Positions 20,092-63,883 of a stretch of 64,000 nucleotides of DNA are shown piece by piece (the first letter of the stretch is position 1; each line of letters begins with the position of its first letter). The DNA lies in contig NC_043019.1 of assembly GCF_006345805.1 (NCBI RefSeq), positions 25,915,360 to 25,979,359 of the forward strand, read 5' to 3'. The notes under the pieces were generated by a model. The model was not told the origin of the DNA. It saw only the letters and a program-made list of their open reading frames with translations, and made no database searches. The position numbers and the translations under genes are program-made. Origin of the DNA: Octopus sinensis (taxonomy: Eukaryota).

Positions 20092-20232
20092 ATTGTCTTG
20101 ATCAAAATGAACATTGTCCTTATTGGGCCAATAACGGTGAATGTGACAAGAGCCAGAAATACATGTATTACAACTGTAAGAAATCTTGTCAGTCGTGTGA
20201 CTCCCCGCCTCCCAATCCAGAAGTAATGGAAT
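20092..20232 (+). CDS. Gene A ShKT exon 1 (CLDQNEHCPYWANNGECDKSQKYMYYNCKKSCQSC + DSPPPNPEVME linker)
   Basis: GATTTCAG acceptor, GTAAGT donor, 141 nt, phase 1-1, open frame, six Cys in ShKT spacing C-x6-C-x8-C-x10-C-x3-C-x2-C. Confidence 0.92.
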
Positions 20233-21103
20233 GTAAGTTTATCTTTGGCTTCTTCTACCCCCATCTTATTAAACTCTCCTGCTCCACCCGTTTTCTACTG
20301 TTGTTTTTAGCTTTTTTGTTTCTTTGAAAAGTATCGACATATTTATGAACAAAACACCCTCCAAATATTTCATAGCAAAAGGAATTTTACAAATGGCCTT
20401 TGGGATTGGTGTTGATTTGGGAATCGTGAGTAGAGTACTCGGAGTTTCTCTGAAGCAACGGCTATGAAGTTATTCATCATTCTCTAAAATGTGTGTGTAT
20501 AGGTGTGTCTGTGCAAAAGTTGAATAGCAAAAAACCTTTTTTCTTTCGTACTATTCTTCCAAAAACAAATCTCGAAATTACGCCCTCAGGGAGAATACAA
20601 CAGGTGTAAAACCACACAGGTATTCTATTTTTAATATGATATGAACGTTGATATGGGGCAGAGCTGGCAGAATCGTTAGCACGCCGGGCGAAATGCGTAG
20701 CCGTATTTCGTCTGCCGTTACGTTCTGAGTTCAAATTCCGCCGAGGTCGATTTTGACTTTCATCCTTTCGAGGTCGATTAAATAAGTACCAGTTACGCAC
20801 TGGGGACGATGTAATCGACTCAATCCGTGTGTCTGTCCTTGTTTGTCCCTTCTGTGTTTAGCCCCTTGTGGGTAGTAAATAAACAGGTATTTCGTCTATT
20901 TTCACCTTTTCAATTCAAATTTTGCCGGGGTTCATGTTGCTTTCATCCATTCAGCGTCGTCAAAGTAACTACCAATTGAATTCTCGTGTCGATGTAATTG
21001 TTGTTGTATTTGCTGCTGTTGTTATTTCTGTCGTCATCGTTGTTGTTGTTGTTGTTGTTGTTATCAATATTATTGTTATTGCTGTTGTTCTGGTCGATTT
21101 CAG

Positions 21104-21244
21104 ATTGTCCTGATCAAAATGAACATTGTCCTTATTGGGCCGATAACGGTGAATGTGACAAGAGCCCTAAATACATGTATTACAACTGTAAGAAATCTTG
21201 TCAATTGTGTGACTCCCCGCCTCCCAATCCAGAAGTAATGGAAA
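21104..21244 (+). CDS. Gene A ShKT exon 2 (CPDQNEHCPYWADNGECDKSPKYMYYNCKKSCQLC + linker)
   Basis: GATTTCAG acceptor, GTAAGT donor, 141 nt, phase 1-1, intact ShKT cysteine pattern. Confidence 0.92.
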
Positions 21245-21959
21245 GTAAGTTTATCTTTGGCTACTTCTACTTGGTTGACAGTCACATTTCTTGCTCCACC
21301 CGCTTTCTACTTTTCTTTCTTTTTTGAAAAGTAACGAGATATTTATAAACAAAATGTAATAGTGACACCCTCCAAATATTTCATAACGAAGGGAATTTTA
21401 CAAATGGCCGTTGGGATTGGCCTTGGTTTGGTAATGGTGGGTAGATTACTCGGAGTTCCTCGCAAGCAGTGGGTGTTAAGCTTTTCATCATTCTCCAAAA
21501 TGTGTGTGTTTTTTCGCGCAACTTGAATAGAAAATATCCCGTTTTCTTTCGTTATCCCCTTACAAAAACAAATTTTGAAATTACGCCCTCGGGGAGAATC
21601 CAACAGGTGTAAAACCACACAGGTATTTTCTCTTTAATATAATATGAATGATGAAATGGCACCGAGCCGGCAGTATCGTCAAAACACAGGGAGAAATGCT
21701 TAACAGCATTTCGTTTGTTTTTACCTTTTCAATTCCAATTTTGCCGAGGTTCATGTTGCTTTCTTCCATTCGGCGTCGTCAAAGGAACTATCAATTGAAT
21801 TCTCGTGTCGATGTAATTGACTTATCCCAACCATCGAAATTATGTGCCTTGTGTTAAATTTGAAACCATGCGCGGCGGACTTACATGCGGAGCAGTTTGC
21901 ATGCATCGGGGGCTGGCATGCGTAGCGTTTTGCAACATGCAGCATACAGCGCCATGCCA

Positions 21960-22400
21960 TTTGTTCTTTCCAGATATCTAATATTTTCCTGATTATTCTG
22001 GCTGTTCCAATTAGTCAAACCTCTTGTACAATTTCTACTGGGTACCCTATTCTGATTTTCTTCAAATTCCCCTTGATTCCTTCTGTTGCTTTCAACAATA
22101 ACTGGCACTATCTTCACCTTCTTGCTTTACTATAACCAAGCTATTTCCTACATAAAATGATTGTATATAGATGTAATTTTTCGCCTTCTTTCTTCACTAT
22201 TTTTATGTCAAATTAGAAGACAACATCAACTATATATCACATGTGGTGCTTCTTGTCCACCACAATTATGTCCCTTCTTTATTGCACTTGCACCTGATCT
22301 GTTTGGAATGGAAGATTCAGAGGTTTTTGCAGGATTCACACTCCACCACTCTCTGAGGCTTGGTTTCATACCACGTCTTGTCTCTCTCTAACACCCACAC
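21960..22400 (-). mobile_element. R4/Dong-like LINE 3' (REL endonuclease) fragment; homologous copies at 25955-26405 and 60350-60785
   Basis: Minus-strand VKIVPVIV...IGTARIIRK-type C-terminus; three copies share the same breakpoints and the preceding GCATGC/TGCAGCC tract. Confidence 0.7.
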
Positions 22401-61900: not shown

Positions 61901-62166
61901 TATGATGCTCCCCCACTACTTCTGCTCGTGATCAGAGATGCACATATCGTCAGCCACTAAGGGACATGCTCAACTGGTTAAGGTCAAACAACTGACAAGC
62001 AAATCTGTGGTATTGAGCAGAATATTTGCTGTAGCCCATCTTATTATTATTATTATTATTATTATTATTATTATTATTATTATTATTATTATTATTATTA
62101 TTATTATATTATTATTATTATTATTATTATTATTATTATTATTGTGACTGTTGTTGTTGATTTCAG

Positions 62167-62307
62167 ATTGTCGTGATGAAAATGTTGATTGTCGTTACTG
62201 GGCCGCTACCGGAGAATGTAAAACTAGTGCAGAGTTCATGAATAAAGAATGTAGGAAATCTTGTCAGTTGTGTAAGTCCATGCACCAAACTCAACCAGCA
62301 GTTGATG
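62167..62307 (+). CDS. Gene B exon 3: ShKT domain CRDENVDCRYWAATGECKTSAEFMNKECRKSCQLC + KSMHQTQPAVD linker
   Basis: GATTTCAG acceptor, ATG|GTAAGT donor, 141 nt, phase 1-1, intact cysteine pattern. Confidence 0.92.
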
Positions 62308-63772
62308 GTAAGTTTACCTTTGGATTCTTCTACCCGGTTGTCATTCACTTTTCCTGCTCCACCCGTTTTCTACTGTTGTTTCATTTAAGAAGTAACGAGA
62401 TATTTATAAACAAAATGTAACAGAAACACCCTCCAGCTATTTCATAGCGAAGGGAATTTTACAAATGGCCGTTGGGATTGGCCTTGATTTGGGAATGGTG
62501 GGTAGATTACTCGGAGTTTCTCGCAAGCCACGGGGTGGGTGTATGTGTGTGTGTGTGTGTGTGTGTGTGTGTAAAACTTGAACGGCAAAAATCCCATTTT
62601 ATTTCATTTTCTTCTTATGATAAAAATATGTTCACACCACGCCCTCGGAGAGAAACCAACAGGTGTAAAACCACACAGGTATTCTCTCTTTAATATATGA
62701 ATAATGGTAGAGAGGCAGGTTGGATGACTCGTTAGCATGCCAGGCAAAACGCTCGGCGGCATTTCGTTCATCTTTAAGATCTGAGTTCAAACTCCGCCGA
62801 GGTCGATATTGCCTTTCATCCTTTCGGGGTCAATAAAACATGTACCAGTGGTCAATGCAATTGATTTAACCCCACCGCCACCAGAAGTTGCTGGCCTTCT
62901 GCCAAAATTTCAAAACCATTACTATTATTATTATTATTATATTATTATTATTATTATTATTATTATTATTACTATTATTATTATTATCATTATTATTATT
63001 ATTATTATTATTATTATTATTATTATTATTATTATTATTATTATTATTATTGAGTGAGAGAGCAGCGCATGCCATCAAAGTGACACTGGATTAAAATATA
63101 CGAAGCCCAGTATACCCATCATAACCACCCGTCTGATAAGGGTACACCAGGCACATGCATCACAACCATATGTGCGCGACATGGTGATCTCATATCAAGG
63201 TAAACAGCGCATGACCTTGCAGGTGGGGCCCAGTTAGAATTTTCTTCAGGTCGAGTAGCCCATCCCGCTCAAAATGTCCCTGAATAAGGGTTGTTTAAGG
63301 ATGTTGAAAGAACCACCCATGTTTCCAGAGGTGAATTATTCAAACCCCAAAGAATCCCTCTCAACACATGGCTATGATGCTCCCCTGCTACTTCTGCTCG
63401 TGATCAGAGATGCACATATCGTCAGCCACTAAGGGACATGATCAACTGGTTAAGGTCAAACAACTGACAAGCAAATCTCTGGTATTGAGCAGAATATTTG
63501 CTGTAGCCCATCTTTTTATACCAAAACAAAATAATGTACATGATAACACTTCCAATCAGTTAAGATCAGAAGCCATGAGAGCCACTGCCTTGTACTGCAT
63601 CAGAGCATTTAGTATTTATTTTTGTTGTTGTGGGTGGTAGTGTTGGTGGTGATGGTGGTGGTGGTGGTGGTGGTGTTATTATTATTATTGTTGTTGTTGT
63701 GGGTGGTAGTGGTGGTGGTGGTGGTGGTGGTGTTATTATTATTATTATTGTTGTTGTTGTTGTTGATTTCAG

Positions 63773-63883
63773 AATGTCTTGATCAACATAAGAAGTGTCC
63801 TCATTGGGCCTCTGTCGGAGAATGTGACAAGAATCCGAAATACATGCATAAGTACTGTGAAAAATCTTGTCAGTTGTGTGAAG
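63773..63883 (+). CDS. Gene B exon 4: ShKT domain CLDQHKKCPHWASVGECDKNPKYMHKYCEKSCQLCE (gene continues beyond the window)
   Basis: GATTTCAG acceptor, AAG|GTAAGT donor, 111 nt, phase 1-1; absent from the ORF track; followed by the same conserved intron block as the other ShKT exons. Confidence 0.92.

Follow-up and report, generated by a model that had tools for sequence, protein, structure and literature searches.

A predicted secreted octopus protein with only ShKT domains, and its probable descent from an astacin–ShKT metalloprotease gene

The DNA analysed here is a stretch of 64,000 nucleotides from Octopus sinensis (hereafter the window; contig C23:25915360-25979359, in an assembly of 2.72 Gb and 13,516 contigs). 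It is AT-rich, microsatellite-laden animal DNA, and its source, which an initial annotation made from the letters alone had taken to be a probable octopus, is indeed one, very close to O. vulgaris. Two paralogous transcription units, which we call gene A and gene B, lie on the forward strand, both containing short exons that encode one six-cysteine ShKT domain each. The initial annotation had described them as seven intact exons and one decayed exon in two genes, and this description was recovered in full by a six-frame scan, a DNA profile built from the exon units and the Pfam profile PF01549. In the six-frame scan of the window, intact C-x6-C-x8-C-x10-C-x3-C-x2-C domains were found on the + strand with their first cysteines at 20094, 21106, 22996, 24834, 27894, 62169 and 63775, and the − strand held no comparable six-cysteine domain, only microsatellite artefacts. 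The DNA profile added the decayed exon, as a truncated ShKT copy at 30662-30774 (E = 1e-12).

Gene B has the following features, those beyond the window being given in window-equivalent positions:

56648-56660, + strand: TATA-like run TATATATATATAA, 62-74 nt upstream of the gene B ATG, a putative promoter element
56722-56790, + strand: exon 1, with the ATG and signal peptide MALVRACVSLLLIALFYNYATVQ; donor CAG/GTAAGT, phase 0
58889-58919, + strand: exon 2, 31 nt, encoding VSAYSDFANS plus 1 nt; phase 0 to 1
62167-62307, + strand: ShKT exon B1, with flanks 83% identical to those of astacin-gene exon C3 (see below)
63773-63883, + strand: ShKT exon B2, the last gene B exon inside the window
64652-64792 (C23:25980011-25980151), + strand: ShKT exon B3, beyond the window
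68064-68174 (C23:25983423-25983533), + strand: ShKT exon B4, beyond the window
69404-69515 (C23:25984763-25984874), + strand: ShKT exon B5 with the stop codon, beyond the window

These form a complete 7-exon gene with an uninterrupted open reading frame of 238 codons, with canonical splice sites throughout and consistent phases. The gene extends 5.5 kb beyond the window end and closes there with three more ShKT exons, the last of which reaches its stop right after the sixth cysteine (...CFICS), so that no enzyme domain follows in gene B; AATAAA signals occur from about 0.9 kb downstream of this stop. The signal peptide and the TATA-like promoter region that the initial annotation had assigned to gene B both stand, but the number of domains is five and not two. 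Exon 1 was located through the O. bimaculoides protein A0A0L8HE40, whose first 25 residues map with 100% identity to 56722-56796; a rule-based scan had given no match for a signal-peptide exon that ends in a phase-1 donor, the donor of the real exon being in phase 0. Because a phase-0 donor cannot meet the phase-1 acceptor of a ShKT exon, an exon running from phase 0 to phase 1 was sought and found at 58889-58919, within a block conserved with an unplaced contig, C6121.

The product consists of the signal peptide, an 8-residue stub and five ShKT domains separated by linkers of 2 to 12 residues. Cleavage is likely after VSA, which would leave a mature protein of 212 amino acids (24.3 kDa, isoelectric point (pI) 8.15, 30 cysteines). 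Pfam ShK (PF01549) recognises all five domains (E = 5e-40, 136.2 bits), and no Pfam domain other than ShK was found in the product, among whose unique peptides are YSDFANSDCR and SMHQTQPAVDECLDQHK. As predicted from this gene model, gene B encodes a secreted ShKT-only protein.

The window had been reported to lack a catalytic-domain exon, and the same holds for the 20 kb upstream and 30 kb downstream of it: across these 114 kb we found no astacin, VWA, P4H, trypsin or GPx exon and no relic of pro-segment, catalytic or cysteine-rich exons. With the astacin profile PF01400, nothing was detected between exon 2 and B1 or anywhere else on contig C23, and the genome-wide search gave three matches on C6121 (32,106 bp). 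C6121 carries on its reverse strand a gene, intact but for its last exon, composed, in order, of a signal-peptide exon, exon 2, two pro-segment exons, catalytic exons (HEIGHAVGFQHEQTRPDRD, SVMHY), a cysteine-rich exon and three ShKT exons, C1-C3. The astacin catalytic domain is present and intact when tested for the HExxHxxGxxHExxRxDRD zinc site and the SxMHY Met-turn. Exon by exon, the gene is mostly 94-100% identical to O. vulgaris 'metalloproteinase nas-13-like' (P0080, 473 aa), encoded at GCA_951406725.2 OX597836.1:26.27-26.32 Mb, and the contig is collinear with this locus (OX597836.1:26,267,065-26,319,677, hereafter L040) at 95-99% identity across 30 kb. C6121 almost certainly belongs to the C23 locus described here, and possibly lies in the assembly gap at 19404-19503.

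Gene B shares its 5′ parts with this astacin gene. Over the 110 nt that precede the ATG, gene B, the C6121 gene and the O. vulgaris astacin gene hardly differ, the signal-peptide exon region of gene B is 96-97% identical in DNA to that of the astacin gene, and the exon 1 protein sequence is 100% identical to the N-termini of A0A0L8HE40 and of O. vulgaris nas-13-like. Exon 2 of C6121 is 52 nt long (VSADFAIDQVISEAANS; the O. bimaculoides match is VSADSAIDEVILDAANS), and the gene B copy is shorter by an in-frame 21 nt, so that exon 2 of gene B reads as a remnant of the start of the astacin pro-segment. The shared 5′ DNA, signal peptide, exon 2 and ShKT exon units identify gene B as a paralogue of the nas-13-like astacin–ShKT gene minus its enzyme part. 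We put the probability of our explanation as a whole, in which the window holds most of a tandem cluster of ShKT-repeat genes derived from astacins and gene B arose from a nas-13-like astacin–ShKT gene by duplication and loss of the enzyme part, at roughly 0.7.

Under this scenario, a nas-13-like astacin–ShKT metalloprotease gene was duplicated to give the precursor of gene B, which would then have shed its pro-segment, catalytic and cysteine-rich exons while keeping the promoter-proximal DNA, the signal peptide and the first pro-segment exon. In O. bimaculoides, a distinct gene joins this signal peptide to a complete pro-segment and to ShKT domains alone, which would place the loss of the catalytic exons before the split of the two species; the pro-region of its protein aligns with the O. 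sinensis nas-13 pro-segment (E = 4e-5). To judge from this comparison, it was only in the lineage of the present genome that most of the pro-segment disappeared. The best domain matches to the O. bimaculoides protein are A5-D1, B3-D2, B2/B4-D4 and B5-D5, and for C3 the best match is the domain encoded by the gene upstream of this one.

We also considered C6121 as the other haplotype of the gene B 5′ region, with gene B as a deletion allele, and rejected it: identity is 83-96% between the two sequences and 95-99% between C6121 and O. vulgaris, and a separate gene without the protease part exists in O. bimaculoides too.

Gene A lies upstream of gene B, and the initial annotation's estimate of at least five domains corresponds to the five intact ShKT exons listed here:

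19404-19503, no strand: assembly gap of 100 N, located 590 bp ahead of exon A1
20092-20232, + strand: ShKT exon A1, CLDQNEHCPYWANNGECDKSQKYMYYNCKKSCQSC plus the linker DSPPPNPEVME; phase 1-1
21104-21244, + strand: ShKT exon A2; phase 1-1
22994-23134, + strand: ShKT exon A3; phase 1-1
24832-24972, + strand: ShKT exon A4; phase 1-1
27892-28032, + strand: ShKT exon A5, most similar to the first ShKT domain of the O. bimaculoides counterpart (26/35 residues)
30718-30752, + strand: decayed terminal-type ShKT exon; acceptor ttgcag/CT

Running the Pfam profile on the spliced models, a check proposed with the initial annotation, gave five domains in each gene, those of gene A at E = 6e-30 and 103.9 bits; single ShKT exons score 33-41 bits, against a gathering cut-off of 20.9 bits. 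Cysteines C1, C8, C17, C28, C32 and C35 are invariant in 10/10 domains of the locus and in the three on C6121, and all 60 cysteine codons of the ten exons (60/60) are intact. Every intact ShKT exon has a phase-1 acceptor (...tttcag/AT, or AA) and a phase-1 GTAAGT donor, so that these exons can be joined in any number with the frame kept. The gene A segment is acidic (pI 5.2), and its peptide DSPPPNPEVMENCPDQNEHCPYWA... is unique to it.

The locus was amplified by both exon and gene duplication, as had been proposed: besides the paralogy of the two genes, A4+A5 arose as a copy of the A2+A3 block (84-86% identity, with a period of about 3.7 kb), and the B2 unit (63733-64576) recurs as the B4 unit (68024-68785, that is 4024-4785 of the downstream extension L031) at 98.8% identity over 0.85 kb. 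Gene A would on this account be a run of five recently amplified ShKT exons followed by the decayed terminal exon. Between exon cores, the ratio of nonsynonymous to synonymous substitution (dN/dS) is 0.14-0.93 (Nei-Gojobori; small counts). Toxin families typically show strong diversifying selection, and the values here indicate constraint instead, as far as such counts can be read.

The start of the intron after every non-terminal ShKT exon is itself conserved: over its first 85-100 nt (GTAAGTTTATCTTTGGCTTCTTCTACCCGGTTGTC...TCCTGCTCCACCCGTTTTCTACTGTTGTTTC) the mean pairwise identity of the ten units is 83.6%, versus 76.4% for the exon cores. This stretch can also be made out in O. vulgaris, and translated read-through of it occurs in the O. 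bimaculoides RefSeq model. RNAalifold predicted no RNA structure in it; its composition is pyrimidine-rich, and it may be an intronic splicing element. Its occurrences are:

20233-20320, 21245-21330, 24973-25060, 28033-28100, 62308-62395 and 63884-63970, within the window: conserved intron starts
L031:793-882, beyond the window, and L040:39820-39909, in O. vulgaris: conserved intron starts

The 5′ end of gene A is lost from the assembly, given the gap 590 bp before A1. No signal-peptide exon was found upstream of gene A, the whole assembly holding only two copies, in gene B and on C6121, and blastn between the regions upstream of genes A and B returned only dispersed repeats. Between the gap and A1, the DNA at 19827-20091 is paralogous, at 79% identity, to the intron that precedes C3 in the astacin gene. 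At the other end, 2.69 kb after A5, the decayed exon reads (P)CIDENTQCAT and then TAG at the expected Trp, and farther along it has lost 26 nt; its homologues are the last exons of gene B and of the O. vulgaris astacin gene.

Two origins of gene A are compatible with this arrangement. Its exons and the decayed exon could be the 3′ tail of the C6121 astacin gene, with C6121 filling the gap at 19404-19503; the product would then be a metalloprotease with up to eight ShKT domains, and the exons accessory modules of an enzyme. C6121 stops 430 bp past C3, leaving the phase-1 GTAAGT donor of C3 open and no terminal exon on the contig, the gap lies just 590 bp upstream of A1, and the only two signal-peptide exons of the assembly are accounted for by gene B and C6121. 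Moreover, the junctions between the C3 donor and the A1 acceptor and between the A5 donor and the decayed exon are both in frame, the latter giving ...E-P-CIDEN..., as in the O. vulgaris protein that ends ...APEPCIDENSQCSNLGLKE, and the distance from A5 to the terminal exon (2.69 kb) equals that from C3 to the terminal exon in O. vulgaris (2.74 kb). However, O. vulgaris has no A-type exon between C3 and the terminal exon, and the DNA before the gap shares only dispersed repeats with the O. vulgaris upstream flank. Identity to O. vulgaris is 95-99% for C6121 but just 75-88%, with true substitutions, for the terminal-exon region of the window and two intergenic anchors, which makes the window segment a paralogue and not an orthologue of the O. 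vulgaris 3′ end. On balance we regard the tail as a tentative and rather doubtful explanation. The missing A-type exon and the lower identity of the terminal region and anchors slightly favour a gene A that is a third paralogue, in which case its 5′ end and the 3′ end of the astacin gene itself would both be unassembled. Whole-genome DNA searches with the downstream segments of O. vulgaris found no closer orthologue, two of the queries being swamped by repeats and two proving to be transposable elements at about 70-82% identity; with such repeat-laden queries, the choice between orthologue and paralogue rests on three short anchors.

A different view of the same features is that gene A, and with less likelihood gene B, is a non-functional relic of segmental duplication that is not expressed as protein. 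The missing start of gene A, the premature stop and 26-nt deletion of its terminal exon, the density of reverse-transcriptase fragments of long interspersed nuclear elements (LINEs) and of repeats resembling short interspersed nuclear elements (SINEs) in the region, and the lack of a matching protein in a large protein collection all point in this direction. Yet 5/5 gene A exons keep their open frames, 30 cysteine codons and 10 splice sites at 10-30% divergence, with dN/dS of 0.18-0.55, and gene B is complete from ATG to stop. The truncated last domain need not inactivate gene A, since the annotated O. vulgaris protein also stops within that exon. We therefore consider a relic origin unlikely.

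The repeats themselves were mapped along the region. The 26 kb between genes A and B are mostly repeat debris, and a SINE-like element of about 240-430 nt occurs in more than 10 copies across the 114 kb. Other elements in the window are:

836-1225, + strand: mariner-type transposase fragment (Pfam Transposase_1, E = 2e-18)
29929-30246, − strand: LINE-type reverse-transcriptase fragment (RVT_1)
33186-33503, − strand: LINE-type reverse-transcriptase fragment (RVT_1)
46674-47553, + strand: LINE-type reverse-transcriptase fragment (RVT_1)
50051-50398, − strand: LINE-type reverse-transcriptase fragment (RVT_1)
38972-40640: about 1.7 kb of non-coding, trinucleotide-type simple repeats, with open frames of 300-370 codons for poly-Thr, poly-Leu, poly-Tyr or poly-Ser in several frames

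Elsewhere in this genome, most other ShKT exon clusters adjoin astacin catalytic exons (contig C3:89.83-89.93 Mb, contig C1:61.63-61.66 Mb and contig C3:52.72-52.76 Mb), consistent with several astacin–ShKT genes, and the cluster at 89.8 Mb of contig C3 resembles a tandem pair. Only a few sites with ShKT exons have no astacin exons on their contig; the locus described here is one of them, and contig C30:2.26/2.39 Mb is another.

Regarding function, the closest solved structures by sequence match are BmK1 (2MCR, E = 2.8e-10), the MMP23 toxin-like domain (2K72) and BgK (1BGK), and these matches indirectly support a ShK fold, which in general has disulfides C1-C6, C2-C4 and C3-C5, numbering the cysteines in order. 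An AlphaFold2 model of one ShKT domain from a 7-sequence alignment was unusable (predicted local distance difference test, pLDDT, 53.8). BmK1 is the C-terminal ShKT domain of an astacin-like metalloprotease of Brugia malayi and blocks Kv1.3, with a K23/Y24 dyad that corresponds to K22/Y23 in ShK (PMC9699480). The Lys-Tyr of the octopus PKYM motif aligns on this dyad and is present in 7/10 domains (A1-A5, B2 and B4), being missing in B1 (EF), B3 (SY) and B5 (VY); the best-matching O. bimaculoides domains lack the dyad Lys (NY, SY, IY, IY and VY).

The linkers of the two genes are ED, VA, KSMHQTQPAVDE, LSNAHVPSVSEN and DSPPPNPEVME(N/Y), and no KR, RR or RxxR processing site was found in any of them. 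As two linkers have just 2 residues and none has a dibasic site, the gene B protein is probably secreted whole. Extracellular, non-enzymatic and rich in disulfides, the products would be of the beads-on-a-string type and would be secreted intact, and the shared promoter-proximal DNA suggests that they are probably expressed in the same cells as the protease. They might bind whatever the ShKT tail of the protease binds, acting as a protease-free binding module or as a competitor. K+ channel block by the Lys-Tyr-bearing domains is a possible activity.

The initial annotation read the locus as a candidate toxin-like family, fitting a product of a venom or defence gland. In its strongest form this would make genes A and B K+ channel toxins of the posterior salivary gland or skin, expanded under predator-prey selection. 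The products are secreted and ShKT-only, Lys-Tyr occupies the positions of the K23/Y24 dyad of BmK1 in seven of the ten domains, BmK1 is also the nearest solved structure, the mature gene B protein is basic (pI 8.15), and exons and genes have been amplified recently. In Cumia reticulata, the vampire snail, multiShKL proteins are specific to the salivary glands, as are the M12-ShKT astacins (Gerdol et al. 2019, PMC6409789). The toxin reading nevertheless finds no support at this locus, where gene B shares its 5′ parts with an astacin–ShKT gene. With no processing sites between domains and linkers of down to 2 residues, no 35-aa peptide would be released. In addition, dN/dS is below 1 in all informative pairs, the dyad Lys is absent from B1, B3 and B5 and is not conserved in O. 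bimaculoides, and the gene A segment is acidic. Our literature search found no paper on octopus ShKT-only proteins, on these genes or on their accessions. Furthermore, because the 5′ end of gene A falls in the gap, gene A may join the astacin gene, and a large enzyme domain of this kind is what the initial annotation itself had held to speak against a toxin. We judge a toxin function improbable. A bolder combination, to which we give little credence, is that this lineage turned an astacin gene into a multivalent protease-less ShKT protein and amplified the Lys-Tyr exons (the five A-type exons and B2/B4); the outcome would be a saliva, venom or mucus component, new for cephalopods, which as an intact multi-domain protein blocks K+ channels of prey. 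An O. vulgaris skin-mucus proteome is enriched in M12A astacins, which shows only that astacins are secreted there (PMC10138644).

The counterpart in O. bimaculoides is already annotated, as A0A0L8HE40 ('ShKT domain-containing protein', 310 aa) and as XP_014773035.1 ('uncharacterized protein LOC106871202'), which is a further point against the toxin reading. The RefSeq model (XP_014773035.1, P0035) is chimeric: from a start inside the upstream gene's ShKT tail, it translates 38 codons of the conserved intron start (RKFSFGFFYSVAIHFSCSTRF...) as read-through and is then spliced into the 5′ untranslated region of the gene that follows (…LFVVRCSTLVST ahead of MALVRAC). The corresponding frame of that region in the window holds a TAA. 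In O. vulgaris, the last astacin exon (L040:42560-42700) is an otherwise complete ShKT exon in which the second Cys codon is followed by one extra base, so that the annotated protein ends early (…CIDENSQCSNLGLKE); the extra base is either a recent frameshift or an assembly error.

Several points weigh against the derivation of gene B and the picture built on it. The comparison draws on predicted gene models of O. bimaculoides, one of them visibly chimeric. Gene A may be a pseudogene, having no assembled 5′ end and a last exon truncated by a stop. The B2/B4 repeat could be an assembly duplication and not a very recent exon duplication. No protein near-identical to the products of genes A or B was found in a collection of 5.8 billion proteins, which may omit the records of this genome. 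Finally, we know of no partner for any astacin ShKT tail, and a role as binding module or competitor is purely conjectural.

If the derivation of gene B from an astacin–ShKT gene is correct, the locus offers a clean genomic case in which a gene for a secreted protease produced a non-catalytic paralogue, with only the targeting modules retained along with the promoter and signal peptide. The stages would be visible across three octopus species, as a full astacin, as pro-segment plus ShKT in O. bimaculoides, and as stub plus ShKT in the present genome. Secreted multi-ShKT proteins and the astacin–ShKT gene family are already known; what is new is the astacin origin of gene B, as read from its sequence. 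Gene B is a concrete candidate for octopus saliva and mucus proteomes. The analysis also flags the placement of C6121, the chimeric O. bimaculoides RefSeq model and the possibly frameshifted last exon in O. vulgaris as annotation problems. The finding alone adds no new venom class, and a toxin label is premature.

Among known systems, gene B resembles most directly the nas-13-like astacin–ShKT gene, having an identical signal peptide, homologous exon 2 and promoter-proximal DNA, the same phase 1-1 ShKT units, the common conserved intron start and the same type of terminal ShKT exon. It differs in lacking the pro-segment, the catalytic domain (HExxH...RxDRD and Met-turn) and the cysteine-rich exons. 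The protein A0A0L8HE40 is likewise ShKT-only, shares 25/25 residues of the signal peptide, a homologous exon 2 and a terminal domain of the same type (CID.NAKCA.WAK.GECDINPVYM). In contrast, A0A0L8HE40 retains an astacin-like pro-segment of about 70 residues with an RFRR site, which is absent from the present genome, has one A-type domain with PNP-repeat linkers in the same gene where there is here a separate run of five, and lacks Lys at the dyad position, with a per-exon identity of merely 42-68%.

The likeness to BmK1 concerns the domain itself, the motif ...SPKYM...CKK.C.LC with Lys-Tyr at the dyad being common to both; BmK1, however, was studied as an isolated 37-residue peptide, whereas the octopus domains are in tandem and not obviously released. 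In architecture, gene B matches the multiShKL proteins of Cumia, in which a signal peptide is followed by a short low-complexity stretch and then by ShKT domains in tandem, with nothing else; these have 2-4 ShKT domains in 123-208 aa and co-occur with M12-ShKT astacins bearing 3-9 ShKT domains (PMC6409789). The likeness noted here is one of architecture; salivary-gland specificity has been shown for the snail proteins. A derivation from an astacin gene, unreported for the snail proteins, is what our analysis proposes for gene B.

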